Notes: a model not told the origin generated them from the sequence alone. A stretch of DNA of 64,000 bases from Anthoceros angustus (GCA_010909165.1 MU008159.1:2356001-2420000); one strand, 5' to 3'. Counted from the first letter of the stretch, positions 11,513 to 55,030 are shown. Numbers and translations: made by a program.

Positions 11513-11519
11513 CCCTTTA

Positions 11520-11985: not shown

Positions 11986-12089
11986 TATAAGAGTACGACA
12001 AAGATGTATATGTACCTATATAAGAGTACGATCCACGTTTGTACACATTACCCGATCCGACCAGTCGTATTTTCGCTAATCACAGCACT

Positions 12090-16217: not shown

Positions 16218-16649
16218 CTTGGCCGTGTGTAATTGTGGCCCCATTGTACACGGAAGAGAAATAGTGTTCCCCACTTGCCGGGTGAACCGTAACATGCAAA
16301 GAAGTCATACATCGAGACAGCCGTTGAGGATCGCCTATGGACATACAAACAACGTTATGGTTTGGTTAACGCTTCGTCTGCAATGCGTCTTGCACATGAA
16401 CACCATCTTCTGTCGATGTCTGGTCGTATGGATTTGTCGCTATGCTTAGGAAGGCTGGTTTCCACGCTGGTCTTTGTAACTGCATAATAATGACAAAACT
16501 TGGTGGAAGACAACGGTTTTCTGGTTAAGTGCGGGCTGGGAAAAATAGCCTTCCACAGACAATAACAGAATTTGGAGAATCTATTGAAACTTATTGAGAG
16601 GAAGGGAAGAAAAAACGTGTCCACATAAGACAAAACATCTTGGCACAGA

Positions 16650-17520
16650 TGTTCATGAACTCTCGTCTTACTCATCATCGCAAGGCTCGCATCACCACCA
16701 CTATCTTCACTATCTTGGGCCACTTTGGCTAGGTCAGATGAAGCCGCAATTCATTTAATTTTAGTCCGATCGCCTTCTTGTCCACAGATATAAATGTTTG
16801 CGAGCATTCAAGTTGAAACCATAATATATGATCACGTTTTGTTCACAAAAACCTTTTATGCGTTTTGTGCAAATTAGCTTTCCTCCTTTTTCCCCGATCA
16901 CACCGGGTCCCTTCATGTCGGATTATAAATTCTTCAACATACCTTCCTTCATACGCATCCGTGTGCTCGGTCATGTACCAATGAGCGACAAAGTGAGGAT
17001 CCGTGCATCTAAGTGAACATCAATGACCCCGCCAATCCAAAACGCGGCTCGCTCTGGTGGTGGGACCGCAATGAACATGTCTTTCCTTATTTCCAAATGT
17101 CACCATTCAACTGCGCAGCTTTCTTGTTGTCTAACAACGGTTTGATATGCACCAAGGTACATATCCTGGGGAAGGTCCCGAGTAAAGCCTCCTCTAGCAA
17201 CGCCTCATCACGTGAAGAACCTTGTTTCTTCAACTTCATCGCGAAACCACTTCCATGCGTCTTGGAGTGCGAGCCCTATATTATTCTCCACAATAACAGC
17301 GATCTCCTCTTGGTCCACCCAAAATTCTTCCCACCATTTATATTCCTTTGCAGTGACATATGGTCTAAGCGCCGAGAGGCCCTCCTTCAAGTGAGCCACA
17401 CCCTCGGTTGGGGATAACCCTGACGATGTGCCTTTCTTATCACGGGCACGAAGGGATGTCAGCCGTGTGGCGGTTACGTCGCTGGATGGGACAAACTTCA
17501 AAAACTCCAAACCGGCTTCC
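16650..17520 (-). pseudogene. C-terminal half of the Sola-like transposase (catalytic core absent)
   Basis: ORF 17208-17657 (LEFLKFVPS...LRARDKKG...VAHLKEGLSALRPYVTAKEYKWWEEFWVDQEEIAVIVENNIGL) is closely similar to ORF 40142-40405. Confidence 0.85.
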
Positions 17521-17729
17521 GTTTCCCATTGTGGCGATGTCGAATATTGTTTGCTTCTAATGACTGTCACAAGGGTGGAAAGAGGGGGAGCTGGAGTGGA
17601 GAAGTCACAGAAGCCCCAGAAGCAGCCTGTGCCAGCGCCGATTCCTTCGCCCTTCACCTACGAGGAGACTGTGATCATTCCAATGCTCGGATGGATCCTC
17701 GCTAATGTTCTTGAGAAAGATTGGATGGT

Positions 17730-20700
17730 GACACAGAGGTGAGCCGAGGATGAGAACGCTCGACTCCACTATTGAAATTGTGGATCATGGGTTTGTGAGC
17801 ATTGCCTAACCAAAGAGCGAGGCTGATGGGTAGTATGGGCGCCCCGGACATGGACGAAGAACCTTGTTCACGTTGTTTTGCACAACAAGGCCTCGTGGAG
17901 TTTGACGCAGTTGATTCAAGACCTCAAATGTATAGGGCGTATGAGCTCGGCGTCCTTGGGTTTCATGCTAAGAAATGTGGTCCTCCCGAGCTTGTCGAGG
18001 TATTTCGAAGCAATGCAGAACCGAGTGTAAGATATGCCATGACATGTAAATTTTGTTTTGTTCGTGTCACCGCGATGTGCTTCTCCTCCGATTTGCATCA
18101 TGTTTGCCGCAGCCACCCTGTAGGAAGAGCTCTTATCGACTGCTGTGTGGAAAGGTGTTTGAGATCTGTGGCACAGCAGTATTGTCTATGAGGAGAGCGA
18201 GAGAGCACCGAGGAATGAGGATGATGGAGATAGCCTGCATCAGATGCGATAGTGAATCGGGACCATCCGACGAGGATGATGGCCCGATCCCGTATGTGCT
18301 GGGTCATTCAGATGGAGAAGGGTCAGACCAAGACGAGGATAGGGATGCAGGACATCATGAACTTTGACCTTGTTCCACCGTCCGCATCGATGCGATGACA
18401 TCGCGCCGCCGGCCCCGACTGGCGGATGGGGAAGACTCGATGACCAAACCCAAACCGTTTGGGCCTGCTGGGGAGATGGACTAGGCCGGGCCGCCTCGGC
18501 GCCCACGCACTCGCCAAGAAGGAGGGAGATCGCCGCCGGGCCTGTGGCGGAAGAGGAGCCAGGCGATGTGGTGGAGCGAGGTGGAAACGAAGAGAGCACT
18601 ACGGATGTCTCGCCGCCATGGACGGACGAGCGATGATGTGCAGTAGTGGGAAGAAGAAGTCAAGAGAGATGAAGGGGGGGGACCATCCGGAAAATTGCCA
18701 CTGCTCATGTTCGCATGCATTTAGGAAAGGCCGGAGGATGCTATCCGAGATGCACTTTGACACGAATTCGGGACTCTTACTCCAAGAAGGTGGTTCGTGC
18801 AGATGTGAAGCCGAGAATTTGAAACCAAAGATCCCATATTACACCGTATGCGCAGATAGGAGAGTGGACGAGGCATGGGCAAATTATTTGGCTCGTGTAA
18901 TATCAAGGGAAGGATTGAGGAGGGCGGTTCCTCTCCTTTGCATGATCGACCGACGAGTGTGACAACCTCGAAGTTGGACCGGAAAGGTTCGTGTAAGAAA
19001 TATGTTATGGGCGTTCTTGGTGGAACCATATTTGCACCATGAAACATTTGGCGATATATCTCGGGGAAAACACGCCCAATATGTGGAAGCTCATCATGTA
19101 CACGGCGAAATGCAGCATCGCAATGTACTACAATACGATGTCGATAAAAGGAAGAAGATGTCCTTCATTGAGGTGTCGTACTTGAGGGACGAACTACTTA
19201 TTGCCAAGATGATGTCCAGATGACCATGAATTGGAAATTCAACCTATACCGTGTATTGGGCTTGATTGAGGACGACGGAGGTGGAAGACGATGTTTACAA
19301 GCGTAATAAGGTGGACAATCGGACCCACATCTTATGCATTGCGAAACAGAGGGAAGGTTTGGGACAACGTGGATCGAATATTTTCAAAATGGGAGGCTGA
19401 GAATTGCCGAGTAGAAAACATGTTCCCGAACAAGTAAGAAGGGCAAAGGCAAAAGGAAGGCAAGAGGAGGCTCGTTGTTGACAACGTGAAGTCAAGGATA
19501 TGCTAGCAAAGCCGTGGAAATCGCTCCAAGGATTCCACTGAGAGTGCACGGATACTCATCACGAGAAGGTGTTGATGTATTATCGACCTAAAAGGTATGG
19601 ATGAGGAGATTACCTTACTAAGAAGTTTCATGTTATACAAGTGGCTATGGTAAAACACTTGGGCTGCTCATCATTCAAGAGGTTAGGCTGGAATATCCTT
19701 TGCATTCGATCGAAAATGATAGCTCGGTTCCCAGACGGCATTCACTGGAAGGTGTGCCATACTACCCATCGCTTTCTAATTCTCTCATCGTCACGTTTCA
19801 AACCCTAACGTTCTTGCAGGCGCTGGCCGAGGCCACTTCCACATGTGATGTGGGGACCGGATTGTTCAGGCCACCCGGCTCAGATCCACTCCATAGAACT
19901 CAGGCTTGAGGCGCCGGCCGGCCGCGCCTCACCATGCCTTGAGATCTACGGGTGCATAATGTTTCAGCATGATATGCACTTATCGCTTTTGCCCTGCAAA
20001 GAATTGAAGGATATAGACAACTTGCGTAAAATGCCGAGGACTTTAAGAATTTCATTTGAGATCAATAATTGGAAGAGTTTGGAAGGCGGTACATGGCGGT
20101 CTGATCTTCATGAAGGGCTGCACATTTTACTGCTCCTGTGGATCGAAGGAGGTTCATTACCAAGTGGAGAAGCGAGATATTTTGAGATGCGGGGCTACCT
20201 TGGTGAGGAGGTACACTCATTAGTCATGGATGTGCCCAGAGGCTTTGATATTGGGCCTATGGACAAACGGATGGATGCCACTATGTTGAGTATAGTCAGG
20301 CCATGAGAAAACTACAAGCGAAGACTTCCGCATGATTGTCATGCATGGAGTGGAGGAAGCCCACACAGAGAATCGGCGCGCAGTGGTGTAAGAAGGGTGG
20401 CCCGTGTCTTCGTGGGATAAAACTAACATGAGCAATGATAGCGGATTTGAAACGGGAGTATGTGACCGCTTGATGGGGCTTGAAGATGGGTGTTCAAAGA
20501 TCGAGCTCGATGATGCCGAATGCCATGCATGGCACTTTAACAATGGGAGGTCCGTCAGGACCATGACATGGTAAAGAAGGTGTACTTGTCCCATGACAAG
20601 TTGGTGGTATGCCCATACCAAAGGCCTCTGATGATGAAATTGATCAAGACCTTCTCAAAAGAAGGAGATCGGGTGGTGGACGATGCTCGGTGGCAACGGT

Positions 20701-21110
20701 ATTAGCCTTGCTGGAAGAAATACGCCATCGGCACTTACGGTGTCTGGATACATCCCAACGCATCCACACACGAGGTTCTCCTGAAGAAGAGCTTACCTTC
20801 GAGCCCCATCGCAAAGGCCCTTCGCAGCCTGGGCAAAGGAGGTTTGTATAAGTGAAAAGGATTGTTCAAAGGCCCAAGTTGTTTCTTTGAGTGCCGGAGG
20901 ATGAAGACCAACGGCTAATTGTTGGAGGAAGGACAAAGCTGGATACCATATGGCAACCTCCCACGCCAAGCGCGGAGGTGAACAACGATGACAACGCTTT
21001 GGGTGAGAATGACAGTTTTGACGAAGAAGAACTGGAGCGTATGCGAAACCTAACTGTAGTTTTAGATTCCGCTTCTGTTCAGGGCCCATTTGAGACCCAA
21101 AATAGCCCGC
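17730..21110 (+). pseudogene. Cargo gene copy 1: Cys-rich region, ParB/Srx-like domain and N4C/N6A DNA methyltransferase-like domain (frameshifted)
   Basis: RVDEAWANYLARVISREGLRR.VPLLCMID (about 18860-18950), VLGG.H (about 19015), MDVPRGFDIGPMDKR (20226-20270) and PYQRP...IKTFSKEGDRVVD (about 20610-20685). Colinear with 41880-45430. Confidence 0.75.
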
Positions 21111-21424
21111 ATGAGTAACCGGATCCAATGTATTAGGATTCCAGACATAAACTTCATTATGCCATGTGTCTATCGGTGCCATTTTGCGAAGTGCACATTT
21201 AAAAACGTCCCTCTTCCACTTCATGAGCATCCAGCGCCAGCTGCGCCGCAGACCGTTGTCTCACTGTGTATGCCTCAATTGTGTTGTTCATGACTTAGTG
21301 GGCCAAGAATGGTCCATTGTCGAGATCGTGATGGCTTTATGTGATTTAGATAATGAGTGATTTTCGCCAAAGGTTGCAACAAAAGAGGGTTCGTATATTA
21401 ACCTCCTTACAGAATTACCATGTT

Positions 21425-21560: not shown

Positions 21561-21764
21561 TGTTAAAACGAATAGCATGCTAGCCCTTAGGGCTCGTTTG
21601 GATTTTAAGTAATAGGACCCGAAAGGGTATTCAGCAAAACGTCATGAACATGCGGTTACGTTTTAGCATAACGTTACAGCCTCATGCTCATACAACATTC
21701 TGTAGAGCATGAACTTCTAATCTACTCGCCACTATGATTTTGTCTCGGTCCATCCAGCGCAGCA
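21561..21764 (+). repeat. copia 5' LTR
   Basis: tgttaaaacgaatagc...cgcagca (TG...CA), homologous to 47372-47578. Confidence 0.92.
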
Positions 21765-21778
21765 TGGTATCCGAAAGC
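21765..21778 (+). promoter_or_regulatory. Primer binding site (tRNA-iMet-like, imperfect)
   Basis: tggtatccgaaagc directly follows the LTR; the canonical form is tggtatcagagc. Confidence 0.7.
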
Positions 21779-29113: not shown

Positions 29114-31454
29114 ACGTTACTCACGCCGCGCCAGGCTTCTTTGGTCGAGACTCCTCTCTGGAATGTCAGCGAACCCGAGAAGTCCTCCCACACTCGCCTT
29201 TACGCCCTTTGTTTTCTTTACTATTCATCCAAGACCGCTTCAAAATTTCCGACTCAGGCATGAGCGCCATCTTCGACATTATAGCAACTGGATTCCTCCC
29301 CAAGAAGAATTCCCTCCCCGACAGCCGGGAGGAGTCTCGCGTTATAATGATGGAGATTGGTCGATCATCATCGCATTCATGGTTGATTCGTTCGATGTAG
29401 CTGTTCTCCTTATTATTCATAACACTAGCTTTGGCTACCAAAACACAGGCTCCTCATGCCCATTATCATTCTGGGCCAAGGCAAGTCTAGAATATGGATG
29501 ATTGTTGGGAGTTCTTGTGAGCTTGCAACCACATTCACAGGTGTCATCCTTTTGATTATTCAAACCCCTAGGAGCCGGATCGGGCTTTCACTCTCAGCTG
29601 AGTCTTTTAGATCGACATCGACTATCTGGATTGGGAGCCCTTCTAGGGCTCTGGTCCGAGGCTACATGTGTTGCATTGAGTGCGGCTCAAACCTCCAGCC
29701 AAGGTGGTCACGGGCATTGGATAAGCTAGTGTGTGATGGCCACCGCCGTTGGGCACCATCAGTTGATGACAGCCGCCGTTACGATAATCGGGAGTTCTTC
29801 AATAATGAAATGGAGCATCGCATCATGCCACCCTCTGCGTCTGTCCGGGAGGTGTTTTCGGAAATGCAAAGGTGGGAAGGTGCTTTGGCCCAATCACGCA
29901 ACGATGCGCGTCAGTGGGGTGTGAAGCGGATGTCAGCATTTTTCCTGCATTTACCGTACCTCCTGGATATTCATAAAATATGGTTAAAGGACATCATGCA
30001 TGTCGAACTGAACAACTGTCAAGCCCTTTGGAATGTCTTTACTGGTCAATGGGACACGCATAATGCTCGAGTTGATATGGAAAATGCAGACTCAAAGCCT
30101 TGGTACAGTTAGTTATGACAAGGATGAAGCTCACCTCCCCCCTGCATCATACTGCTTATCAAGAGAGGCTTTAGATGCTGTTAAAGATGAGATCTGCAGG
30201 ATGAGACCACCAACAGGCTTCGGATCGAATCTGGCATCGTGCTTCAAGGGACCAAAAGTCACCGGCCTTAAAAGCCATGACTGGCATTTACTAATGCAAT
30301 ATTACCTTCCGATTGCCTTGCGAAGTCGTCTTAAAGACCCGGAGTATTCGGCTTTGTGTGAGCTCAGTGCACTATACCGTTGGATGTGTCAGAAGTGCAT
30401 ATGTGTTGCCGACATCCCCCGAATGAAGTCCAAAGTTATAGACATCATGATTGAGCTTGAAAAATGCTTGCCGCCCACTTTTTGGAACCCGATGCAGCAC
30501 ATGATCATCCATCTTATTGACGAAGTCGAGTCCCATGGTACTGTACATAGCAGATGGATGTATCCACTCGAAAGGCATATGCATGTACTCAAACAGTCTG
30601 TACGGCAAAAAGCAAAGCCGGAGGGTAGCCTCGCAACGGGTTACTTATCAATGGAAAGCATGTTTTTGGCAGCAGATTATCTAGCCGCGTACGGCCATCA
30701 ATTCAAGTACAGGACCCTTGACCACGGTACGGAGCGGCCCATTGGAAGGCCCAGACCCTTCACTCTAAGCAAGGACGACCACAAACGATTACATTGGTAT
30801 CTGGTGCAACATTCAGATGCATTACAGTCCCTCCGGATCGAGTTCAATGAAGCGTATGATGGCAGTCTAAATTACCTTCAATGGCTTCAGGCAGGAATTG
30901 CCGCCTTCCGATGGACAAATCTGCCACTATACTCGGATATTCGGGCATTGGTGGCTGGCCCGCGAATGACATTGGATGCATATCGTGCTTTAGAGGTCCG
31001 AGGCTATCATTTTAGAACAAAGGTAGCGAGACCACGCGTGCAACACAAGACTCTTGGGTGCATGGGCGTTTTGACATGGATGAAGGCTCAAGGGAATTCT
31101 CTGGCCAAATTGAAGAAATCCTGGAAGCAATAGGCCGTGGCGGTCATTACAATTGTATTAAATGTGAAGTGGTTTGACTGTGACACTGCACGCGTGCCAC
31201 CATCAATGCAGGTGGATATGAGTGGGTTCATGACTGTGGATACACGAAGGCCATACCGGTATCACCGCGACATCCGAACTGGGCCGTTCACATTCCCTCG
31301 ACATGTGACTCAAGCATTTGCGCATCCAGATTGGAGAGAGGGAAAACGGCATTGGTACATCTGCACAGCCGTTCCATCTACCTGGGATGCATTGCAAGAT
31401 GTCTACAGACTAGTCCGGGTCACGTTGACACAAAATGTGTGCCAAACAACATAG
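29114..31454 (+). pseudogene. CACTA transposase copy 3; best frame 30033-31133 (DUF4218-type region)
   Basis: PPTGFGSNLASCFKGPKVTGLKSHDWHLLMQYYLPIALR...LEKCLPPTFWNPMQHMIIHLIDEVESHGTVHSRWMYPLERHMHVLKQSVRQKAKPEGSLATGY. Confidence 0.95.
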
Positions 31455-36892: not shown

Positions 36893-38240
36893 CTAACAAT
36901 ATTTTACAACTCCGACTTCAAGATTCTCGAATTTCTTGGCATGCTCCTCTTCAATCGTTCTAGCCAAAAAATCAAACTTGTTCGTCTTTGGCTCTTTTTG
37001 GTTGCCCAAACTTTTCGTTCCACATACTCCCCACCTCACTGTTTGCGTCCTCGCAAACAGTACTGGGTGGAGGTACTTCTTGACCTTCCACCCATTCACT
37101 GCGAATTCCGCCCGACGGAGTTGCATGATCCATTCTCGTATACTGTGACTACCTCGTAAGGTCCCATCCATCTCAATCTAAGCTTCCCTGGAAAGTCTAG
37201 GTACCGACTATCATATAGAAGAACCAAATCCCCGTCCACGATAGTCTCCTGCTTCCTTAACCTCCCATCATGCCGATCTTTTCTGAGTTCCTGAATCCGC
37301 TGAGTCTCCTCTAAAGCATCCTCCCTACGTTCCTCCTGCTCTATGAACGATTCTAGTCTAGCTACCTGACTATCCTCTACAGTCATGCGTTCATCCTCCA
37401 TGATTCTGTAGGTAGGTACTTCAAATTCCACGGGCATCACAGGTGACATGCCATATGTTAGATAATAAGGGGTCTTCTTGGTGGTTATCTTCTCCGCGGT
37501 CCTGTAAGCCCACAATGCTGAGTGCAACTTGGCATCCCAATCATACATGTGCGTCACAGTTACCTTGGTGAGGATTGTGCACAACAACCCATTTGTCTTC
37601 TCCGTCAATCCATTCGCTTTGGGGTTGTAGGGAGTCGTCTTCCGATGCCGAATGTTGAAGTAGGTGGTCAGGGATTCAACGACCGAGTTGAGAAAATGTG
37701 TCCCCCGATCGCTGACCAACTCTAAAGGACATCCGTACAGTTATGATGTTCTCGAATAAAAACTTTTGCTACCGCAGCGCTCCCTTCCTTGCCGCCTCCA
37801 CCATCTTAGTACAATAATCCGTAGCCACCAAATGTCTGCTTCCTCGTCCATTGCGTTGGTGGTTTGATTGGTCCACGAATCGATTCCCCACTTCTCGAGC
37901 AGTGCTAGCGGTAAGATGTAGGTAAGAGGCCATTGTGTCGACAACGTAGGCCGCCCAACCCTCGACACGCATCACACCTTGGTGAATTCCCCACACATCC
38001 TTTTGCATCGTGAGCCCACCAACCCTCGCATTGAATCTTCTTAACGGTCACTGCGAATAGTGTCCACTCCCTCCGCATGTAGCGCCTCCCGTGGCGAGTG
38101 TAGCCTCCTCGGCTTCGAGACACCGTCGGATCTTCTCGCCCCATGGTGTGATCCCGTTGAATATTCGGACATTGCTCTTGCAGACGTGACAAGCTGACAG
38201 TTGTCGCCGGCCAAATATCCCATGTAGGTGTTCTCGAACA
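36893..38240 (-). mobile_element. Ty3/gypsy integrase (H2C2, rve and GPY/F modules), frameshifted, 5'-truncated
   Basis: SDRGTHFLN...RKTTPYNPKANGLTEKTNG...WDAKLHSALWAYRTA...TPYYLTYG; GKLRLRWMGPYEV; LPLALLEKWGID; CDAC. Confidence 0.95.
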
Positions 38241-38399: not shown

Positions 38400-40997
38400 C
38401 CCGGTGGGGGCACGAATGATTGCCACTTCCGGACACGATGCCTCTCAATCCTTCCATCCGAAGCCTCGGTGACACTTTGAAGGCCCCGACAACCGCAAAT
38501 ACTCTATCATGCGAGAGCAGCGCGGGATCGTTGACGTTGACAAAAAGTGAAGGGGAGACAATGCTTGCAGATTTCAAGAAGCCTTGTTGCAACAAAATGT
38601 GTTTGCTAAAGCTGACCAAAGAGCGATTTCAGGAGCAGCGATACCGCTTTCTTCGGATGGGAAGGCAGGAACAGGAGACATTTCCGATCTCTTGTTTGAT
38701 CGGATGGAGTGCAGGATAGAAGGAAAGCGGTCACACATCTCATGGGAGGCGACTCTTATCAGCTTGAAGGCTTTCAAAAGAGTGTATTGCCTTGGGCACA
38801 AGAGGTATGAGGAGCTAAAGAGCAGAGTCTTTCTGGAATCACCTTGGGATGGATTCGGACCAAACCCAAAGGCACAATCTACTTATGCGCTTGATGCCAT
38901 TTCTTGGATGGACAATGCTTTTATGTTTATGGCCCACCGATGTGTCTTTCATGTGCTTGTTCCTCTGGTTGTTGAATGCTCTGCCTATCATCTGGCACCG
39001 GATGTACCCTTCTTCTGTCTTCTTCTGTCATGATCGATTCATGTGCTTGCAATGCCCAATACTTACATTGGATTGGCTTTCCCCGGGAGGCGTCCTCCTG
39101 CGGGCGCCTCGTGGGCGCCGGCCGGCGCCGAGAGGGTTGGACGGCTGAGGGGCCGCGGCCGGCCGCGCCTTCCTGTCACTGCTTATGATGATTCGAGACC
39201 CCTCCCAAATCATCCGTCCAAAAGGAAGGGGTGGCGCCACCGACGCCGCCCTTCCCCCTGCTTGTCACCGCATGAATGTTTGGTAAGAGCCCGAAAACGC
39301 TTTTGTATAGGTTGGATGGTTCTCTACAAAGCCCAAAGGTGGATGGTGAGGATGGGGGTCTTTTTATTCTGATTATGATGTTCGTTTTGGAGAAATACCG
39401 GTTGCCTTGGAAGCACATCGTGTGCGGCTCCACCAGAATGAAATGGCTAAACACAGGAGCAAGAGCTATGTGGAGCCACATAAGTATATCTGCTATCAAT
39501 TGATGGAATGGACCAAAAAGAGATACCTCATCTTCTCCGGTGGCGAAAAACCTCAGAGGAGTGTCGATTTCACCACGTGGTTGGGTGCATGATTCACAAC
39601 TATACGCTTAAAGCTAGAGCCTATTTGCATTATGCGAATCTGGAACGACGCGAATCTTACGATCACCATTATTCAGGACGTTATACATAACTACGAGGGT
39701 GTCCTGCCAAGAGTTTTGTACTTGCGGTTGGACAACACATGCGGGGAGAATAAGAACCACCGCTTTTATCCGAACATGCTTGTTGATATGGGTACTTTTG
39801 AAAAGTGAAAGTGGGATTCCTTTTGGTCGGACATACTCATGATCAAATCGACGGATGTTTTCTTGCTTCTCCAAAAGCTTGAAACATAAAGAAGCTCACA
39901 CGCTTCCGCATTGTCGAGATCTGGTACACGCCGCTACGAGGTCAAGGTATTGATCATGTAATACTTCCGGCCATATGTGTGGCCCATTACACAAGGCCGA
40001 GAGGACTCGATTATGGGGCGGTTAAGAAACCGAACAACCTATCGCTCCAAAGTCCAAAATAACACGTGAAGAAAAAGCGGCCCGTGGGTTTGTGACGATC
40101 GAGAAGCAAGATTCGACCTCGCCTCGGGGAAATCAAGGGGTTTGGAGTTTTTGAAATTCGTGCCTTCGGACACTATAACAGCTGCGCCCTTGACTGCACT
40201 GCGGTCGAGGGATAAAAAAGGAAGCCACATGATATTATCTCCAACTGCAGCCGTTGCTCATCTAAAGGCTGGTCTTGCAGAACTTAGGCCGTATGTGACA
40301 TCCAGGGAGTTTTTATGGTGGGAAGCTTTCTGGGTGGACCAGGAGGAGATTGCTGTTATTGTGGAAAACAACATTGGCCTTGTGCTACACAAACCTTGGA
40401 GGTGAGACTGTGCGTGCACAACCAACCTCTGCATGTTCCGGATGAAGCACTGCTGGAGGAGGCATTGCTGAGGGAGCTCCCACAACGAGATATGTATTTG
40501 GGAGCATACCAAAATCTGGGGAGGCAACAACAAGAAATGTCACGGTTGAATGGTGATATCGCAGAAATAAAGGCAGGAATGTTAGTTGCAGTTCCCGCGG
40601 GCACCGACACGCAAAATAGGCCCTTTTGGATTGGCAAGGTGACTTGTGTTGAACTACATGCACCAGAGCCTCACTTCCTTGTTCATTGGTACAGAACTGA
40701 ACACACAGATGCGTATGAAGGGAGGTACGTGGAAGAATATATAATCGAGGGATGGCCGCAGTGAAGCAACTCGGGAGACGGGGGCTAAGGCTATCCGTCA
40801 AGAATATCCAACAAGTTTTTGTTCACCAAGCAGTCATCCTCTATTATGGGTTCAGCCTCGCTGGAAAACATTTGTCTGTTGTGGATAAGAAGGCCATAAA
40901 AGATAAGTTAATTGAATTGCGAGGGTTTATTCAACCAGAGTCAAAGTGCAACCGAGGACAACAAGAGGATGGTGTGATGCGGGCCCAAATAAGATGA
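38400..40997 (+). pseudogene. Sola-type (DUF7869-like) DDD transposase with C-terminal SH3/Tudor-like barrel; introns and frameshifts
   Basis: KPCCNKMCL N-terminal Cys motif; SIDGMDQK (about 39497); LYLRLDNTCGENKN (about 39715); VKVGFLLVGHTHDQID (about 39805-39850); GMLVAVP...PFWIGKV...FLVHWY (40575-40690). Confidence 0.8.
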
Positions 40998-41879
40998 AGG
41001 CGTGGAGTCGGCAAGAGTAGGAAACACTCGAATGATCATCATTTTCGGCAATTGATGAGGTTATCGTCATGCTCTATTCTCGTAGTTTGCGGTGCACAAT
41101 TCTATGTCGGTGCACATTTGAATAGTATCTACGCCCATGCTAGGCTTTTGGTTGTGGCTATCCTCTATGAAGTTGTAGACTGCTATAGATATTATCTTCC
41201 ATTTTTCAAGAGTTTGTGCTTACCATAGAGAAGGACACGTGGGACTGTAGGTAGGGCCGACATCGGCATTGCGGCATAATGTAAGGCATCATCGTTGAGC
41301 CGTGCGGGCATGTTCCTCTGTGCGTCATGACGGCGGGAACTAGTTTCACGATCGCTTTAAGTTCATCGATTGCGATCGGGGGCTGGTGAATATATTTGCG
41401 ACCACAATTGAGACCTGAAGCCATCCCCACCCAATCCAAGTCTTTTCAAACCAAATCCGAGTTAAGGCACGCAACTCCCGCCATTCGCAAGGGATCATCG
41501 GCATGGCGGAAGGGCGCCGGCCGGCGTCCTTCCTCTCAAACCGCATACCGCCGCCACGGGGTCACCGTCCTCAAAGTTCATCACCCTTCTTTTTGTAGAT
41601 TTCATTTTGCTCCACGGAAAAGACCGGCAATTACCGCAAAGAATGGCCTTTGTCATGGGTCTTAAATGCGGACCAATTGAGGTTAACTCTAACACCATAA
41701 CCCTTCGTGGCGTTGAATGGATCTTCTATCACCGGGTTCTACTTTAATTGTCACCCTTCTTTTCTCATCAGAATTGACCCATACCCCAAAAGTGGGAGTT
41801 CAATGCCCATGTGAAACCCCCTTCAGAGGATATATGTCACAAAACCCTCTTCGTGAATATTCACCCCCTTCGAAAGATA

Positions 41880-44800
41880 TCGCGTTTTGGATGGTTGTTC
41901 AGGATCCGGAACCAGAAGACGAGAGCATGTTTTGGACTCCGTTGTACAAGCTGTGGATTATGGGTTACAAGGATGCACTGCCAAATCAACGGGCAAGGGT
42001 AGGGTGGCTAGTGTGGGCAACATTGGACATGTCCAATGGGGATCCTGTAGCACAGTTGCTGTGCATTACAAGGCCCCAAGAATTTGATGCGGTGCCACGG
42101 TCCCGGTATACAGGCGTTCGAGATCGGGTTCAACAATCTTGTGATCAAGAAATGCGAACTGTGCTTTTGTCGGAATGTAGGCGGAGCAATCGTATTCGCA
42201 AACCTTATCCAATTTCCGCTTTCCAATGTTTATGCTTTACCGTCTGCCTCTAACAGTGAGCATTGTTCATTGTGCAGGGCTCTGTGATGGGGAATGCATT
42301 CATCAGGACGTTGTGTGCGGAAATCACACAAATGCGGGCAAGATGAGGGTCATGTATGCGCAAGAGCCGAGGTGCGTGATGAGGAGGAAGAGAATGACAG
42401 TGAGAATGAGGAGGGCACAGAGTTTGGCCGAGGATGAAGACTATGGCCCGATACGATATCTGGACATCGAAGAAAATTCGGACGCAGCAGACGAGGATGC
42501 GGGGTTTTCATGCCTTATGAAACCCTCGGGGTTGCACTGGAAAATGGGAGAGGCGCTGGCGCACCGGCGTCGGATCGAGGAAGGGTCTTGGAAGTTGGAG
42601 AGGAACCAGGCGCCGGCCGCGCCTCACGCCAGGAGGGGCACAAGGCTCCAGCGCATGAGAGGGAGGCGGCGCCGGCCGGCGCCTCTCATGACACAACAGA
42701 GGAGAGGCGGTAGGGACTAAGGGAAAGGAAGGCGGGATCTGCTTGAAGGAGATCGGAGAAGAGGGAATGACGAGAGGACCATCCTAAGGCAAAAGCAAAG
42801 AGGAAAGGAACAACCGCAGAGGGTGGAAAATGTGGTGACATTCCCACATGTGACAACAGACCGAGGAGAGGATTGCGGAAGCTATCCGGATGAAGACCCC
42901 GACACGGGTCGAGAAGCGACATATCACGAAGAAGGTAGTATTGGAAACAAAGCTTGGTGAAATTGGAGAACCTTCGACCGATCGCACTTACGCCCGATGC
43001 GATGAGCACGTGGGTGGATGAAGCATGGGCCAATTATTTGGCGCGTGTTATATCAAAGGAGGATTGAAGAGGGCGTTTTGCCTTTATTATGTATGATTGA
43101 TCCGGAGTGTGATGACATGGAAAAGCTAGATGGCGTAGATTCATAAAAAATATGTCATGGGAGTACTTGGAGGAAACCACACTTATATGAATGAAGCATC
43201 TTGCGACATCTCCGCAAAAGCGGTTTCAGTATGTGGAGGCTCATGTGTACTGTGGTCTCAACGTATAGGAGATGCGAGTCCTCGCCACGACCATAATACT
43301 ATGTCCCAAGAAGATGAATTTTATAGAGGTGAGGTATTTGCGTGATGAATTGATTATTGCGAAACGGATGCTATGTATGACCATGACATGGAAATTCAAC
43401 TGTATAAGGTGTTGGGGCTTATTGAGGATGATGAAGCACGAAGATGATGTTTATAAATGTAACAAGGTTGACAACAGACCACATTTTATGCATCGCTAAA
43501 CAAGAGGGTAGGGTATGGGAAAATGTAGACAAGATATTTACCAAGTGGGAAGCAGGGGAGTTGCCAGAGCAGAAGAAGCATGTGATAGCAGGGACAAGCA
43601 AGAAGAGCAAGGTGAAGCGGAAAGTGGCCGAGGAGGCCAACAAAATAGACTCTGTTTATGTGAAGCCAAAAGATATGCTTGCAAAGCCTTGGAAATCATT
43701 TCAAGGGATTCCAGCGGGGGAGTGTGGGCAGCAGATACTTATCACCGCTACAGAGAAAGTGTTGGCAGGTCTCATTGACCTGAAAGGAATGGATGACGAT
43801 ATATCTCTTCGGAAGAAATTTCATATTATTCAAGTGGCGATGGCAAAACACCTTGGTTGCTCGTCTTTTGAAGAGGTTCGGCAGGAGTATCCCCAGCACT
43901 CAACTGATGAAATGCTTTCGCGATTCCAAACGGCATTTGCGGGAAAGGTAAGCCATTTTCCCAGACCTTCTTTCCATGTTCAATTCGCCTGGGGGCGCCG
44001 GCCGGCGCCCCCTGATCATTGTTTTGGGGGCGCCGGCCGGCCGCCGGCGCCCCCTCTGGTCTCCATGCGGAGCAGGGCAGGGCGCCGGCCGGCGCCGGCC
44101 GGCGCGCCGGCGGCGGCGCCCTCACGATGATCACCGGTGTTGATCGGGCGAGCGCCCCCACTAGTTGTGAGGTGCTTGAGCCAGTCTACGCATTCTAACA
44201 GGTTGTTTTTTTGGCAGCAACTGAAGGACGTGGAGGTCTTGACAAAGCTGCCCGACGACTTCCGGCATTTTATTTTCGAGATCAATAATTGGAAGGGCCT
44301 AGAGAATGAGCAGCGGGCTTTGGCGGACAAGGACTTGGAAGAAGGACTCCATGTATTCAATGTTCCGTCGACTGAGAAACAGGTCCAGTACCTGGTGGAA
44401 GCCCGCAACGTTCTGGACATGCGTGGGTTTTTGAGGGGAAGGAAATACACCCTTCTTGTCATGGATGTTCCCCGTGGATTTGACATCGGGCCAATGGACA
44501 AACGAATGGATTTATCAATGATGGGTGCTGTGTTTCAAAGTTTCGGAGAAAGCGGAAAATGACGACTTCAATTATCGTCATGCATGGTGTTGAAGAAGCC
44601 CATACGGTAAGGGAGGGAGGCGGAAGTGGTGTGCCAAAGGCGGCTTGGTGTCATTCATCGGGATAAGACTAACATGAACAACGTGAGGCGATTTGAGACG
44701 TGGAATACGTTACAGTTGGATGGGGTGTGAAAGATGGATGTTCAAGGAGCCATGATGCCAAATGTGATGCACGGGACCTTCAACAATGGAAGATCTGTTA

Positions 44801-45430
44801 TTGGACACCCTACTGTCGTCAAGAAACATGTTTACCTGTCTCATGACAAGTTGGTAGTGTGCCCATACCAGAGACCATTGGGTCTTATGATGAAACTCGT
44901 GAGGACATTCTCCAAGGAGGGAGGCGGGTTATTGATGCATGCTCGAGGCGGTGGACTCGACACACTAGCCGGCTGGTCAGTGTGGCCGGAACTGTATTGC
45001 AATAGAGGCGGACTTGAGATGCGCAGGTTACATTGCACAGCGCATACACGGTGTTGATGTCCCGCCTGCGGCATTTAGGAGCCGACTTTTGAGCCGCACG
45101 AGGACCATCTCGTGGGCCAAAAGAGGTTTGTAGTAGTGAGAAAGACTGCTTGAAAGCCCAAGTCGTGGCATTGAGTGCGAAGAGGTTAAAGACGACAACC
45201 GGCGAACTTATGGATGATGGACAGCAGACATTGGATGCTGTATGGCAGTCGACCCCGACAAACGACGACACCCAAAATGATATCAATGAAGACCAGCAGG
45301 CTTTAGGTGCGAATGATAGCTTTGACGCACAGGAGATGGAGCGCATGCGGAATTTGGCACTTGTAGAGGATTCAGTTCCGGTGGATGCAATGGTGGACTC
45401 ACATACAAGCCCTCACGATAAAACACTGTA
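41880..45430 (+). pseudogene. Cargo gene copy 2: Cys-rich region, ParB/Srx-like domain and beta-class N4C/N6A DNA methyltransferase-like domain
   Basis: WVDEAWANYLARVISKE...LPLLCMID...GVLGGNHT...YVEAHVYCGLN..MRVLA.DHN (43010-43300); LLVMDVPRGFDIG (44452-44490); PYQRPLGLMMKLVRTFSKEG..VIDACS...GRNCIAIEAD (44863-45013). There is a GT-AG intron at about 43948-44215. Confidence 0.8.
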
Positions 45431-45798
45431 GACGCTGATTAGCAAATTCTCCCTATGCAGTTAGCGGGTGTAGGTGTTTAGTTTTGCTAGTTTTGCTACT
45501 ACGAGAACATGCATGTTCCGGATGTTTCCGAACCCTTTTAAATTTAACAATGGGACTTTTCTCTAATTTTGTTGTTACATGCTTTGTTTAGTAAGTGTTG
45601 CCGGCGCATGGGGTTCGTGTGGGGGATGTCCTGTTCAGTTTGATTTTCCGCTATGGATATGCATACACGGATGGTGTCTGTATTCTGAAACCAGCCGTTT
45701 TCCGCAATTTGAGGATGGTGTCTTTTCCGTCAAAGGGGTTATTTTTTCCTTGAAGGGGGTTTGTATATTCCCCCCCTTCAAAATTTATGGTGTTAACA

Positions 45799-47327
45799 CT
45801 GAAAACAGGCAATCAGGTCAGAACTAGAATCCCTACAAGCGAATAATACTTGGACCTTAACTTCTTTACCTAAGGATAGAAAACGAGTAGGTTGTAAGTG
45901 GACTTTTAAGATTAAGTTAAATGCTGATGGGAGCATAGAAAGATACAAAGCTAGATTAGTAGCAAAGGGATCTCAAAAATATGGTTTTGACTACGACGAA
46001 ACCTTTAGCCCTGTACTTAAAATAACCTCACTCAGGATCCTCTTAGTCTTAGCATCTCACCATGACTATGAGCTAATGCAACTTGATATCAAGACAACTT
46101 TTCTATATGGAGACTTTAACCACACCATCTACATGGAGATCCTTGAAGGAATACATGTCAAGGATAGGGCAAAATACAATGCCTGCCTACTACTAAAGTC
46201 CTTATATGGACTTAAGCAAAGTGCTATGAAATGGTTTTTAAGCTAGATGTTAGCATTAAGGAATTAGGGTTTACTAAGCTAAATTCCGATAGTAATATTT
46301 ACATTAAAAGATCAGGTGGCCACTTTATTGTCTTAGGAGTATATGTGGAAGACATAGTCCTTATGTCCAACTCTAAGGCCATATTAGAAGACACCAGGTC
46401 TATGCTAGCTAAACGTTTCTCTATGACCACTTGTAGAGAACTTTCTTTTTGTCTAGGCATTCAGGTTCTAAGGGATAGAAATGCGAGAAGCATTCTCATT
46501 CACCAATCCAAGTATATTCAAGAGATTTTAACCAAGTTTAAGATGTTAGATGCTAGACCTATCTCTACACCCATGGAAATGAACCTTAAGCTTAGCAAAG
46601 AACCGGATCAACTGGATGACACCTCAGATACTACTCTTCCTCCTTACTCTTCAGCCGTAGGTAGTCTTATGTACCTCATGGTTTGTACTACACCAAACCT
46701 ATCCTATTCAGTTGGAGCTCTATCACAGTTTCTATCAGCTCCTACTCAAGCTCATTGGAAGGCAGTCAAGAGGATATTCCGATACCTAAGAGCAACCCCG
46801 GACTTAGGGCTGCTTTACCAGTCACACAGCCTCTACAACTTGAAGGCTTTAGCGATGCTGACTGGGCCGGCAACATTGACGACAGAAAGAGCACAAGTAG
46901 TTATGTATACCTATTTGGAGGCACAGCAACAAGCTGGAGTAGTAAGCGGCAACAAGTAGTCGCACTCAGCTCAACCGAGGCCGAGTATTGCTCCTTAACT
47001 CATGCTTGCAAAGATGGACTTTGGCAACTCCTCCAACTTTCGGAGTTAGGCGAGACCCAGAGGATTCATAGGCTGCTTTATTGCGACAATCAAAGTGCTA
47101 TTGCACTCACATACAACCCGAAGTTCTATGCACGGACGAAGCACCTGGAAGTACAATTCCACTTCATAAGGCAAGTAGTTGATGAAGGCAAATTTATAGT
47201 TCTTTATTGCCCAACAGAACAAATGACGGTGGACGTGCTTATGAAAGCACTCAGCTCTATCAAACACCAAGAACACACGACAAGTATGGGACTAAGAAGA
47301 GTCTCAGAAATCAACTTTAATACTTAG
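45799..47327 (+). mobile_element. pol: copia reverse transcriptase plus RNase H (frameshifted)
   Basis: ELESLQANNTWTL...VGCKWTFKIK...ERYKARLVAKG; QLDIKTTFLYG; KSLYGLKQS; LGVYVEDIV; YSSAVGSLMYL; FSDADWAGNIDDRKSTS; ALSSTEAEY; CDNQSAI; RTKHLEVQFHFIR. Confidence 0.97.
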
Positions 47328-47362: not shown

Positions 47363-47578
47363 AAGTGGGAATGTTAAAACGAATAGCACGCTAGCCCTTA
47401 GGGCTCGTTTGGATTTTAAGTTTTAGGACCCGAAAGGGTATTCAGCGAAACGTCATGAACATGCGGTTACGTTTTAGCATAACGTTTGGGCAGAGCCCCA
47501 TGCTCACAACATTCGTAGCACATGAACTTCTAAATCTATACGCCACTCGATTTCGGTCTCGGTCCATCGACCGCAACA
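47363..47578 (+). repeat. Polypurine tract (aagtgggaa) plus copia 3' LTR (47372-47578)
   Basis: tgttaaaacgaatagc...ccgcaaca, homologous to the 5' LTR. Confidence 0.92.
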
Positions 47579-49764
47579 TGCTCTATGATTTTGAGGCATC
47601 CCGGCCATGCAGCACTCAAAAGCGCACAAGGAAGAGGCACGATATGAAAAGTGTGATTGACAACCTCGCGGACTTTACGGGATCTCTGAAACACATGATG
47701 AAGAGCCGACCATATCCCAGGAGAAGGTGGTGGCAAAGTTAGAGAGGCGGGTTCGGTTGAAAGGATCGAAAGACCATCGGCGGGCCGGGGGCCCTACAAG
47801 ATATGGGTCCTCGCCTTTGTCAAAGACTCTTGCAAAGTGCATATGTCGAGGCGCGGTTGTGGTTCTTGTTCGCGGGACCATGAAATCCGTGGATTGCGGG
47901 TCGGTTGAAAGTCTTTGCGGCCAGGAGCTATGATTTTGATGGAAGGTACGAGACGCTGTTCCAGGTGGTGGAAAACGAAGTGCTCCTGTATGGGCACGAA
48001 AATGTGTGCATCACAGGGTACTCTCTGCAGGATGCAGTGGTTACTTGACATTCACACCAAATTCTGGAGGGTGAGCACCTGGACGCCGCACCTCTACCTC
48101 AACAAAAGCGACCCCATCAGCAGTGGCTACATCAACTTCTTCCAGGGCATCCAGGGCATCAATCCTCACTTGAATTCTGCCTTTCTCAACTTGGCCGGTG
48201 GCGCACCTTACCCTCTCGTCGCTCATGAACAAAGAAGCTTCCCGACGACCTGCTTCCTTACCGTCTCGCCGCCCCCTCGTCGGACTAGGTTCAGTATAAG
48301 AGGTGGAGCATTCTCGTCCTGCACCAAAAACTCGCTCACTGCACCACTCACTTTAGTCCTCATCAGGAGCTGTGTCAAACTTCATGATTTCAAAGGTCCG
48401 GTGGGGCTTCTTTTTCTTTTTATCGAGGGCACTACGACGTTTGTAGTGGACATTATTTCATATCTCAACAATTGGTTCCCTCCCCTTTTCAGCTTCTAAG
48501 TGGCCCGGCCGGGGGCAAAGGTTCCCAGCGGTCATGTGCCGCCCTCCGAGTTGTCCTCGGCGCAAGAAGCGTTTCGATCATTGAAAACAAAGACGATAGT
48601 CTCTAAGTTTGGATTTTAAGTTTTAGGACCCGAAAGGGTATTCAGCGAAACGTCATGAACATGCGGTTACGTTTTAGCATAACGTTTGGGCAGAGCCCCA
48701 TGCTCACAACATTCTGTAGCACATGAACTTCTAAATCTATCTGCCACTACGATTTCGTCTCTCGGTCCATCTGACCGCAACATGCCGTCTATGATTTTGA
48801 GGCATCCCGACGACTGCAGCAGCTCAAAAACGGCACAAGGAAGAGGCACGATATGAAAAGTGTGATTGACAACCTCGCGGACTTTACGGGATCTCAAACA
48901 CGATGAAGAGCCGACCATATCGAGAAGGTGGTGGCAAAGTTGCGAGCCGGGTTCGATTGAAAGGATCGAAAGACACATCCGCCGGGGGCCCCATAAGATA
49001 TGGGTCCTCGCCTTTGTCAAAGACTCGCAAAGTGCACATGTCGAGGCGCCCGGTTGTGGTTCTTTGTCGGGACCATGAAATCCGTGATCCGAGCTACGGA
49101 TTTGAAAGTGCCTGCAGGGAGCTACATGACGATGGAAGGTGCGAGACCTGTGTGGTGGAAAGCGAAGTGCTCTGTGGAGCACGAAAATGTGTGCATCACA
49201 GGTACTCTGCGGGATGCAAAGGTTATTGCTTGACATTCACCTGGAGGGTGAGCACCTGAGCACACGCGCGCACCTCTACCTCAACAAAGCGACCCCATCG
49301 GCGGTGGCTACATCAACTTCTTCCAGGCATCCAGGCATCAATCCTCGCAGATTCCGCCTTTCTCAACTTGGCGGTGGCGCACCACCTCTCGTCGCTCATG
49401 AACAAGAAGCTTCCGACGACACCTTCCTCTTACCGTCTCGCCCCTCGTCGGACTAGGTTCGATAAGAGGTGGAGCATTCTCGCACACCAAAAACTCGCTC
49501 AGCACCACTCACTTTAGTCCTCATGAGGTGTCAAACTTCATGATTTCAAGGTCCGGCTGGGGCTTCTTTTTCTTTTTATCGGGGCACTGCCACGACGTTT
49601 GTAGTGGACATTATTTCATATCTCAACAAGCTGGTTCCCTCCCCTTTCGCCTTCTAAGTGGCCCGGTTCGGGCAAAGGTTCCCAGCGGTCATGTGCCGCC
49701 TTAGTTGTCCCACGCGCAAGAACGCTTTCGATCATTGAAAACAAAGACGATAGTCTCTAAGTTT
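47407..49764. repeat. Tandem duplication 47407-48606 / 48607-49764 (3' LTR remainder plus lipase 3' part)
   Basis: Junction microhomology gttt at 47407, 48607 and 49761. A second LTR copy lies at 48607-48782, followed by tgccg. Confidence 0.9.
47579..48290 (+). pseudogene. 3' part of the interrupted lipase gene; further copies at 48783-49450 and 50311-50745
   Basis: Matches 53980-54925 (VRGTMKS, HENVCITG, WTPHLYLNKSDPISSGYINFFQG), with internal deletions. Confidence 0.88.
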
Positions 49765-53185: not shown

Positions 53186-53869
53186 AGACATGACTCCGAA
53201 AGGATCAAACTTGGGATCTCGTAGAAATTCTCCGGTCAGGCAGTCCTACAAGAAACGCAACAGCAATGTCAGTCCCATGCGCGTGTCGTGTCCCGCGGAC
53301 TTTTTCCCATCGTTCCAGCCCCATAAATAAAGTGCTTTGGCATGTCAGAGATTTCCGTCCGGGGGAAATCGGTGAGAAGTCTACAATAATCGCTTCCGCT
53401 TTGGTTATTCGAAGGATTTGTTGACTCAAGTTGCGGTCACTGGGGGATCGACCACGTCTCCCTTTCTTCCAACCTTATCTAGTCCTGCCATGATCCCTCT
53501 CTATGTGTTCAAACATTTCCGGAGAGTTCAAGCAAGTGAGCATGCAACAAGCTCTTGCCCAGGGGATCCACAGCTGTGCTCAAATTTTGTGATCTTGACG
53601 AGGTAGGGCTAGAGATGGAAAGGCGCAGAAGGGGAAGCCTGGGGATCATCAGGACCACCATGATAATGCCTCGTCAGGTCTGTCCCAAAGGTCGGATTCC
53701 GACACGGAAGGCGACGATGAATTGGCAAGAGGAGAAGGATCTGGAGAAAATGAGGAAGGAGGACCGGTACCTTGTACAGCTGCAGATCAACAACTGATGC
53801 GCATACAACCTCTGGCCATGTACGTTGGTTGCAATTGCAAGCGCAAGCTTGCCAAGATGATGATATTGA

Positions 53870-55030
53870 ACATCTAAGCCCATGACATGGCTGACTGACT
53901 CAGAGTATTGTTGTGGGCAGGGTTCCAGAGGCTCAAGAAGTCGTAGAGGTGCAACATTTAATGGCTCAGATGGTGCATGCCGTCTATGATTTTGAGGCAT
54001 ACCGACGACTGCAGCAGCGCGAAAACGGCACAAGGAAGAGGGACAAGATGAAAAGGGCGATCCACAAGTTCGCGGACTTTCTGGGATCTGAAACCTTTGA
54101 TGAAGACCCGACCATATCCTAGGAGGAGGTGGTGGCAAAGTTGCAGAGAGCGGGGTTCCAGTTGAAAACAGCTGAGCACTGTCAGCCAGGCCAGGGGCCC
54201 TACAAGATATGGTTCCTCGTCTTCGTCAAAGACTCTGCAAAGTGCACATGTCGAGGCGCGCCCAAAGTTGTGGTTGCTGTTCGCGGGACCATGAAATCCG
54301 TGAAAGACCTGCTGTCGGATTTGAACGTGCTGCGACAGAAGCTACATATGGACGAAAGGTACGAGAAGCTGTTGCAGGTGGTGGAAAACGAAGTGCAACA
54401 GAATGGGCACGAAAATGTGTGCATCACGGGTCACTCTCTGGGTGCGGCTTTGGGACTCCTGGTGGGCAAGGCTATGGCGACCAAGCACACGCCTGTGGAC
54501 GGCCATTTCTTCAACCCGCCTTTTGCCTCCTTCACCTGGTTCGACAGCAACCTGCTGCGGCGGCTGGAAAGGGACTGCAAGCTTCTTCTGCTGGCATCTC
54601 ATATGGTGATGAACTCTTTTCATGACGACTACAAGGGCACGAGTCGGTGGTTGCTTGACAGTCACACCAAATTCTGGAGCGTGACGACTTGGACGCCGCA
54701 CCTCTACCTCAACTAAACCGACCCCATCAGCAGTGGCTACATCAACTTCTTCCAGGACATCCAGGGCATCAATGCTCACTTCAATTCTGCGTTTCTCAAT
54801 TGGCAGGCAGAACTGGCTCGGCCGGTGGTGCACCTTACCCTCTCGTCGCTGATGAACACCAAGAAGCTTCCCAACCACCTGCTTCCTTCCGCTATAATCA
54901 CCGTCTCGCCGCCTCCTCGTCGGAGTAAGTCCAAGATGAAGACGTGGGTGTGGTCCCACACAGTCTCGCAGTGGCTCAATTTTCCTTGTCCTCTTGAACG
55001 GGCGGTTATCCAAGTGCGTCGGCCTGAGTG
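53870..55030 (+). pseudogene. Lipase class 3 / alpha-beta hydrolase, At4g10955-like; uninterrupted by TEs but carries in-frame stops
   Basis: HLMAQMVHAVYDFE, VVAVRGT, VCITGHSLGAALGLL (nucleophile elbow), FFNPPF and WTPHLYLN*TDPISSGYINFF. Stops at about 54120 and 54714; the other copies have AAA at the latter position. Confidence 0.85.

Follow-up and report, generated by a model that had tools for sequence, protein, structure and literature searches.

The stretch of DNA analysed here, 64,000 nucleotides from Anthoceros angustus (GCA_010909165.1 MU008159.1:2356001-2420000; hereafter, the window), carries the remains of two related mobile elements, which are called copy 1 and copy 2. The segment at 41.9-45.8 kb, which belongs to copy 1, is in our view likely to be the decayed methylase arm of a Sola1-type (DUF7869) cut-and-paste transposon, and this is on the whole the best explanation for it. 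Part of that same explanation, and held with the same good confidence, is the order of the accessory gene of these elements, which in intact relatives would comprise: (i) a ParB/sulfiredoxin-like segment; (ii) a helical DNA-binding domain resembling that of ParB/Noc; and (iii) a beta-class amino-methyltransferase. In the intact arrangement, observed in the liverwort Riccia sorocarpa and in copy 2, this gene is divergent from the transposase gene and lies between AACA...TGTT ends flanked by 4-bp target duplications. Both copies of the window are dead pseudogenes, and copy 1 is an inert relic.

The assignment to Sola1 comes, in the first place, from the transposase pseudogene of copy 1. One piece of it (39593-39805) matches DUF7869 (PF25273) with an E value of 2.1e-10 and, in a comparison of motifs made by eye rather than by scored alignment, three motifs of the catalytic region are shared with the curated Sola1-1_Ec32 element of the brown alga Ectocarpus (SIDGMDQ/MMDGANQ, LDNTCGENKN/VDNTVAENKN and VGHTHDQID/VGHTHIQID, respectively). 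An earlier note on this DNA, made before the present analysis, had placed a DUF7869/Sola1 transposase next to the methylase gene, and the match and the three motifs bear this out.

The boundaries of the elements provide the second line of evidence. Copy 2 ends in AACATGG.../...CCATGTT, and its empty site is found at 53848-53851. In Riccia (locus L001), the DUF7869 gene (-) and the methylase gene (+) stand back to back in one 10.9-kb element with terminal inverted repeats (TIRs) at 2883 and 13813 (ends AACACCCGC.../...GGCGATGTT, that is, AACACCC.../...CGATGTT) and the target-site duplication (TSD) TAGA; a second Riccia locus retains the same right end as L001. A second gene on the opposite strand inside the same TIRs is thus present in Riccia L001 and in copy 2, but not in copy 1. 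Since in these relatives the gene lies within TIR and TSD, it is cargo of the family, as had been proposed, and not a chance capture; the condition under which that proposal was to fall, namely, a gene often located outside the Sola TIRs, does not hold. The pairing of both genes has also been published for Sola1-1_Ec32 (Genome Biol 2025, PMC12477816).

These same boundaries bear on the opposite idea, namely, that we are dealing with a host gene, or with a domesticated writer of N4-methylcytosine (4mC) or N6-methyladenine (6mA) of the kind of DN4MT1 and N4CMT, which happens to lie beside transposon debris. UniRef does label the Riccia homologues as 'DNA methylase N-4/N-6 domain-containing', but two decayed copies occur within 64 kb, Riccia has multiple paralogues, the gene is located within TIR/TSD boundaries, and the motif of DN4MT1 is TSPPY, not D-x-P-Y; a host gene is, hence, very improbable.

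The surroundings of copy 2 have been duplicated. Two stretches that are 92.6% identical (13800-14721 and 15250-16163) include the left flank and the first ~290 bp of copy 2 and, in consequence, a second, orphan left end exists at 14426-14721. A third copy of the left flank, at 53341-53983, is the empty site.

Regarding the methylase gene of copy 1, its contents were established by reading the three forward frames of 41,700-45,600. All the peptide strings quoted in the earlier note were found, in differing frames, within 41,936-45,431 (+): WVDEAWANYLARVISKED (43011-43067), EGVLPLLCMID (43069), VLGGNHT (43145-43183), AHVYCGL (43230), DHN (43280), LLVMDVPRG (44440-44478), PYQRPLGLMMKLVRTFSKEG (44854-44928), VIDACS (44922) and GRNCIAIEAD (44984-45016). 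The Cys-rich N-terminal region described in the same note was likewise recovered: both window copies show such a stretch (17901-18190 in copy 2), which is not in the Riccia protein and has no Pfam match. A Pfam scan of ten open reading frame (ORF) pieces from the window gave no match and, therefore, the domain calls were tested through homologues. Aligned onto the window by tblastn, the family proteins cover 43224-45079 of copy 1, including the ParB-like, helical, motif IV and post-motif-I blocks, with the ParB/sulfiredoxin (Srx)-like segment aligning with residues 26-114 of the family protein P0001. After the block that ends at 43947 there is a splice donor (AAAG/GTAAGC), and at this position the Riccia gene is interrupted by an intron; the frame-preserving gap that follows is probably a real intron. 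The features of both copies are collected in the Table.

Table. Features of the two Sola1-type copies in the window (coordinates are those of the window; a point in the strand column stands for no strand)
Feature	Position	Strand	Basis or remarks
ParB-like + beta-class DNA amino-methyltransferase pseudogene, copy 1	41936-45431	+	frame reading, tblastn, phmmer
Cys-rich N-terminal region, copy 1	42059-42400	+	11 Cys in 123 residues
ParB/Srx-N-like segment (GGNHT box, DHN), copy 1	43011-43349	+	five frame changes, TAG at 43266
Helical DNA-binding region (putative), longest intact piece, copy 1	43444-43950	+	phmmer E 7.8e-24 to family protein P0001
Methyltransferase motif IV, DVPRG, copy 1	44464-44478	+	frame reading against relatives
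Motif X/I region (PYQRPL..., VIDACS, GGG, GRNCIAIEAD), split across three frames, copy 1	44854-45016	+	frame reading, tblastn
DUF7869/Sola1-type DDE transposase pseudogene, frameshifted, copy 1	38420-40997	+	three-frame reading; motifs DGMDQ, DNTCGENKN, VGHTHDQID
Right terminal repeat, copy 1	45735-45794	.	ends ...TATGGTGTT, flank AACA; aligns to copy 2 right TIR, at the expected distance past the stop codon
Terminus-like sequence between transposase and methylase gene, oriented as right end	41854-41886	.	local alignment
Cluster of 16-bp palindromes GGCGCCGGCCGGCGCC, in the probable intron between DNA-binding and methylase exons, copy 1	43994-44106	.	motif search
Further 16-bp palindrome, copy 1, inside transposase region	39114-39129	.	
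Further 16-bp palindrome, copy 1	41513-41528	.	
Further 16-bp palindrome, copy 1	42668-42683	.	
Copy 2, internally deleted element	15872-21424	+	TIRs AACATGGTA.../...TACCATGTT, TSD CTTG
Transposase tail, copy 2	16764-17657	-	similarity to copy 1
Methylase pseudogene, copy 2	17763-20904	+	similarity to copy 1

The decay of both copies is extensive. The reading frame of copy 1 shifts 14 times between 41,936 and 45,431 and, at 13 of these frame changes, the adjoining conserved blocks overlap or sit less than 50 nt apart, so these 13 are not introns. At least two in-frame stops interrupt the conserved blocks (TAG at 43266-43268 and TGA at 44728-44730). The frameshifts claimed in the earlier note are thus real, and in copy 1 there are 13 or more of them. 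The methylase pseudogene of copy 2 is broken independently, by 11 or more frame changes and four or more stops, and the DNA identity between both copies is about 69% over the conserved parts.

The identity of the methyltransferase was approached through the relatives of the window segment 43444-43983, which was used as a phmmer query in an exhaustive search of 1.8 billion cluster representatives. The search gave ten matches, including proteins of Riccia sorocarpa, Adiantum nelumboides and Ginkgo biloba, as well as assembly contigs (word-indexed homologue searches returned Riccia paralogues only). Two of the ten relatives, the Ginkgo protein P0003 (28.1 bits) and the Riccia protein P0008 (28.8 bits), narrowly pass the gathering cut-off (26.7 bits) of the Pfam family N6_N4_Mtase (PF01555). 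Read directly, the Riccia methylase gene of a second locus (L002) has four exons. The third exon carries motif IV (...LAIADIPYGF...), while the fourth exon (L002 13667-14353; NIYQKPQRLI...DWVLDLCAGSGTT...RNCGAVELD) matches: (i) PF01555 (E 1.9e-8, 35 bits); (ii) the phage family phrog_67 'DNA methyltransferase' (E 4.7e-11); (iii) several phage methylases, by tblastn; and (iv) a 443-aa Nitrospirales fusion of ParB_N and N6_N4_Mtase (32% identity over 97 residues, E 1e-7). Motif IV lies 5' of motif I in Riccia (DIPYGF at ~13310, CAGSGTT at ~13960), and the order is the same in the window, where DVPRG (from 44464) is followed by PYQRPL...VIDACS...GRNCIAIEAD (44854-45016). As far as sequence can tell, then, both the methylase reading and the beta-class order that had been claimed are sound. 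The Pfam check proposed along with that claim was positive for PF01555 through the homologues; it was negative for the window pieces themselves and, in all family members, for ParB_N (PF02195).

Some particulars of these relatives are worth recording. The public gene models of Riccia sorocarpa (GCA_046195345.1) KAL3696720 and R1sor_003872 omit the motif-IV exon (L002 12985-13530), and in the L001 copy motif I is closely followed by an in-frame stop. Another bacterial relative of the methylase domain, from Bacterium UASB270 (L006), has no ParB domain and serves as the modification member of a restriction-modification pair of the EcoO109I type.

The canonical motif IV of amino-methyltransferases is (D/S)-P-P-(Y/F/W). 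In both window copies the motif reads D-V-P-R-G (20229-20243 in copy 2), which does not match this consensus, and in the relatives it reads DIPYG, DAPYG or DIPHG, the latter in Ginkgo. The S-adenosylmethionine loop of Riccia is DLCAGSGTT; the motif I loop of the window is split over three frames (44922-44982), and no read-through is possible. Being pseudogenes with a non-canonical motif IV, neither of the two copies can methylate DNA. When DPPY and SPPY enzymes are compared, a D at the start of the motif speaks for adenine-N6 and not for cytosine-N4. Because motif IV of the family starts with D, not with S, the mark that active elements may write on their own DNA would be 6mA more likely than 4mC.

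Two features of motif IV count against a functional methylase: throughout the family I, A or V stands where canonical enzymes carry the second proline, and in this genome R takes the place of the aromatic residue. That residue was lost before the decay set in, because two old, diverged copies both carry DVPRG. It could then be argued that catalysis had already been lost in this plant lineage before the gene decayed, and that the protein was from then on a DNA-binding or regulatory accessory only. DVPRG is common to both copies at ~69% DNA identity, which puts the aromatic loss before their split; the Ginkgo motif is DIPHG; the second proline of DPPY is missing family-wide; and the inactive methylase domain of DIRS1 elements, for which a comparable role has been proposed, offers a precedent (PMC4738411). 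Nevertheless, Riccia and Adiantum retain D-x-P-Y-G-F together with an intact CAGSGTT motif I, and, when the two copies are compared, the methylase region has been conserved no less well than the other parts of the gene. We consider such an early loss of catalysis rather unlikely, although it carries real weight.

Concerning the N-terminal module, structural models suggest that it is probably ParB-like, which is also what the authors of the algal elements called theirs. An AlphaFold model of the Riccia exon (model 1, from an 18-row alignment) is confident only at residues 110-290, with pLDDT (predicted local distance difference test) values of 85-94 in the helical region. In a Foldseek search of this model against the PDB, 12 of the top 15 matches are ParB/Noc/Spo0J chains (E 0.3-1), and VIA-align superposes residues 109-250 on the ParB/Noc DNA-binding domain with Z 4-4.9 over about 100 residues. 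A language-model search sets the Riccia exon beside DUF3723 clusters of fungi, the models of which are similar to ParB_N+HTH_ParB proteins.

Several results tell against a ParB identity. No family member matches ParB_N (PF02195) in Pfam, PHROGs or PDB sequences, and hhalign of the family against the bacterial ParB_N-methylase gave no match. The conserved box of ParB/Srx proteins is G-x-x-R / DGHHR, while that of the family is GGNH(T/S) or DGHHT, T or S replacing the arginine (the box of the bacterial Nitrospirales protein is AGHGR). The fold matches fall short of the usual significance (E > 0.1, Z < 5), and pLDDT for the N domain does not reach 50 in either of the two AlphaFold models. The second of these (model 2, with the upstream strand added) is of low confidence and, in Foldseek, gave no ParB match, but only meaningless ones. 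A profile of the N-terminal module compared with PDB sequences yielded no ParB and only non-significant matches (HABP4_PAI-RBP1, E 0.018; a MarR regulator, E 0.1), and all matches of an ESM Atlas shape search had template modelling (TM) scores below 0.3. In short, the ParB/Sulfiredoxin segment claimed in the earlier note remains a probable one, towards which the weak fold matches lean, but finds neither a hidden Markov model (HMM) nor a profile match, and its box lacks the arginine.

Two other observations concern this module. An SH3-like match of the AFRxGExW stretch was weak and was judged to be due to chance. In the family proteins P0009 and P0013 (L004, a Logan contig of SRR8128906), the ParB-like box (DGHHT) and the helical module are joined to an N-terminal SAM (sterile alpha motif) domain, and this fusion is an intron-less ORF of 549 aa.

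If the module binds DNA, candidate targets can be found in the elements themselves. When one mismatch at most is allowed, the perfect palindrome GGCGCCGGCCGGCGCC is matched six times in the window, always at 39,114-44,106, that is, in copy 1; chance would give none. Degenerate copies occur at the homologous intron of copy 2 (19819-19834 and 19910-19925), and two weaker matches (3 mismatches) in a GC-rich tract (10,010-10,129) outside the recognised Sola1 copies. The Riccia palindrome, TGTATGCGCGCATACA, also has 16 bp but is different; allowing up to three mismatches, there are 22 in L001, all within the element (3,246-13,545), and 12 in L002 (10132-14580), all in or just beside the methylase gene. 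In both species, the palindromes avoid exons and cluster in: (i) the intron that separates the DNA-binding exon from the methylase exon; (ii) the divergent intergenic region; and (iii) the stretch from the 3' end of the transposase gene to the terminus. Each window palindrome is extended by different complementary flanks. As for the GC-rich tract, it extends over 10010-10233, and a direct repeat of 64 bp lies within it (10042-10104 and 10171-10233).

The parS site of bacteria has this form, too, being a palindrome of 16 bp. By analogy, the palindromes are candidate targets of the ParB-like module, which, in active elements, would bring the methylase to the element's own DNA, possibly through these element-specific sequences in introns, intergenic and subterminal regions. 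On the other side of the balance, the palindromes can equally be read as transposase-binding sites or small foldback insertions. That GGCGCCGGCCGGCGCC and TGTATGCGCGCATACA are parS-like sites for the element's own module is, for the time being, doubtful. Should it be true, intact land-plant Sola1 elements (e.g., those of Riccia) would self-target adenine (or N4-cytosine) methylation to their own DNA, and there would be a transposon-encoded, sequence-addressed source of methylation other than 5-methylcytosine (5mC) in embryophytes.

A related possibility is that the N-terminal module belongs to some other type of helix-turn-helix, the palindromes being transposase-binding repeats or foldback insertions. 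The unmatched ParB_N HMM and profile and the weak MarR-type winged helix-turn-helix match (E 0.1) agree with this possibility, as do the presence of palindromes also inside the transposase gene, each with different complementary flanks as foldbacks would have, and the similar GC-rich core at 10010-10129, outside any recognised copy. However, ParB/Noc/Spo0J chains lead the structural matches, the language model puts the module beside DUF3723, the models of which resemble ParB_N+HTH_ParB, the palindromes occupy homologous introns of the two diverged copies and also, with other sequence, of Riccia, and the curated algal homologues were termed ParB-like by their authors (PMC12477816). We judge this possibility unlikely and prefer a ParB-like module.

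Copy 1, in turn, appears to be rearranged. Its transposase tail is on the + strand (40104-40746), whereas that of copy 2 is on the - strand (17552-16921). The earlier note had described copy 1 as TIR-bounded and copy 2 as having the same architecture, and each statement holds in part. The right end of copy 1 was found (45794), but an inverted left TIR was found neither within 37.7-38.7 kb nor across the whole window; similarly, the methylase genes of both copies are homologous, but their transposase strands differ. The anatomy of copy 1 is, provisionally, that of a transposase arm inverted relative to the methylase arm, to judge from the alignments. Between the two arms, ~0.9 kb past the 3' end of the transposase gene and ~50 bp short of the point where the conserved part of the methylase gene begins, lies a terminus-like sequence (41854-41886), which can be aligned with the copy 1 right end and also with the copy 2 left end once the latter is reverse-complemented. 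These terminus alignments of copy 1 are marginal (score 31, versus shuffle maxima of 22-35), which is a point against the boundaries drawn for it.

The same picture would result if copy 1 consisted of two truncated elements abutting each other, a reversed one that keeps the transposase arm and a forward one that keeps the methylase arm. The terminus-like sequence lies at the distance past the transposase 3' end (~0.9 kb) that is seen in copy 2 (about 1.3 kb in Riccia), the conserved N-terminus of the methylase begins within about 50 bp of it, and an LTR (long terminal repeat)-retrotransposon integrase (37096-37719) abuts the other side. A single inversion of the left arm, nonetheless, yields the same arrangement, and nothing in the window separates both options; two abutting elements are a serious possibility, somewhat short of an even chance.

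In relation to known systems, the closest one is Sola1-1_Ec32 of Ectocarpus, which carries an accessory gene for a 1104-aa protein with ParB-like and N4C/N6A methyltransferase domains, and has AACCG...CGGTT termini and 4-bp TSDs (PMC12477816). For transposons of green and red algae similar proteins are stated, and these proteins are proposed to bind and modify their own element (PMC12477816). The land-plant elements have in common with Sola1-1_Ec32 the transposase motifs, the AAC...GTT termini and the 4-bp TSD, as well as an accessory gene on the strand opposite to the transposase (in copy 2 and Riccia) with the same two-domain description; the accessory protein of Ectocarpus is likened to the window gene by its description, and the transposase by sequence motifs. 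Unlike Sola1-1_Ec32, which measures 21.5 kb, the elements described here have about 5.5-11 kb, their hosts are land plants, and the window copies have an extra Cys-rich N-terminus and the motif IV DVPRG, and are both dead. Given this precedent of 2025, the novelty attributed in the earlier note to the pairing of a transposon with a ParB-methylase was overstated (PMC12477816). What the window provides is a new host record for a type of element that was already known. What may be new is the occurrence in embryophytes (Riccia, Adiantum, Ginkgo and Anthoceros angustus), together with the non-canonical motif IV and the lineage-specific palindromes.

Among other eukaryotic transposons, the Plavaka (EnSpm-like) elements of the red alga Bostrychia moritziana carry the accessory genes PAG2 and PAG3; an N6-adenine methylase is encoded there, as is, in a separate gene, a protein whose N-terminal domain is ParB-like, and inverted-repeat arrays beside the ParB-bearing gene have been proposed as its own binding sites (bioRxiv 10.1101/2025.02.11.637652). 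They are, like the elements studied here, DNA transposons with methylase and ParB-like parts, and the palindromes described above are comparable to their repeat arrays. But they belong to another superfamily, and in them ParB is fused to a 2-oxoglutarate (2OG) oxygenase and the methylase to a SET domain, while here one protein holds both parts. Basidiomycete KDZ transposons are associated with TET/JBP genes (Iyer et al., 2014); they are also eukaryotic DNA transposons carrying a gene for a DNA base-modifying enzyme, but their transposase is of another superfamily and their chemistry is 5mC oxidation instead of amino-methylation.

Comparable fusions are known beyond these transposons. A 'ParB-HTH + Dam' family of chlorophytes and chytrids, and the methylases of phage ParB-Tls loci, have been described (Iyer, Zhang, Aravind, 2016, PMC4738411). 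Like the gene of the window, the ParB-HTH-Dam family shows a eukaryotic amino-methyltransferase fused to a ParB-type module, with an origin in phage or prokaryotic ParB-methylases; that family, however, is of group 2 (EcoKI/TaqI/Dam-like), while the window family matches N6_N4_Mtase (PF01555) and has the beta-class order. The domain order is also that of bacterial and phage ParB_N-N6_N4_Mtase fusions, such as the 443-aa protein mentioned above (locus L007, from a Nitrospirales metagenome-assembled genome). These prokaryotic proteins show the canonical DPPF/Y, and their ParB_N is recognisable; the plant gene is transposon-borne and spliced, and its N-domain has neither an HMM nor an hhalign match. 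Finally, N4CMT of bdelloid rotifers and MpDN4MT1 of Marchantia are likewise bacterial-type beta-class amino-methyltransferases in eukaryotes. They are, nonetheless, host genes, their motif IV is of the SPPY type and their 4mC activity has been demonstrated, whereas the window family is transposon-borne and has D-x-P-Y/H/R. The connection with N4CMT/DN4MT1 drawn in the earlier note found no support, the motif being TSPPY in DN4MT1 versus a leading D in the family.

Transposon-carried DNA-modifying enzymes bear on the self-marking and protection of mobile elements, and on the origin of the eukaryotic writers of 6mA and 4mC. The window alone adds little to these questions, as both copies are dead and the pairing was already published. 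Nevertheless, the module extends to land plants, with relatives in a liverwort, a fern and a gymnosperm. The apparently intact genes of Riccia, in a complete element, make the idea testable at the bench, and a lineage-own 16-bp palindrome confined to the element is a concrete candidate for a binding site.

Other transposon relics, recognised by eye, are found near the two copies: the LTR-retrotransposon integrase already mentioned (-), a Copia-type reverse transcriptase or RNase H at 46076-47327 (+), and a CACTA/TNP2-like ORF at 29456-31454 (+). Besides, a family of ~200-bp repeats that are 86-88% identical (21561-21766, 47372-47580 and 48607-48784) has one member just beyond the copy 2 right end and two members downstream of copy 1.

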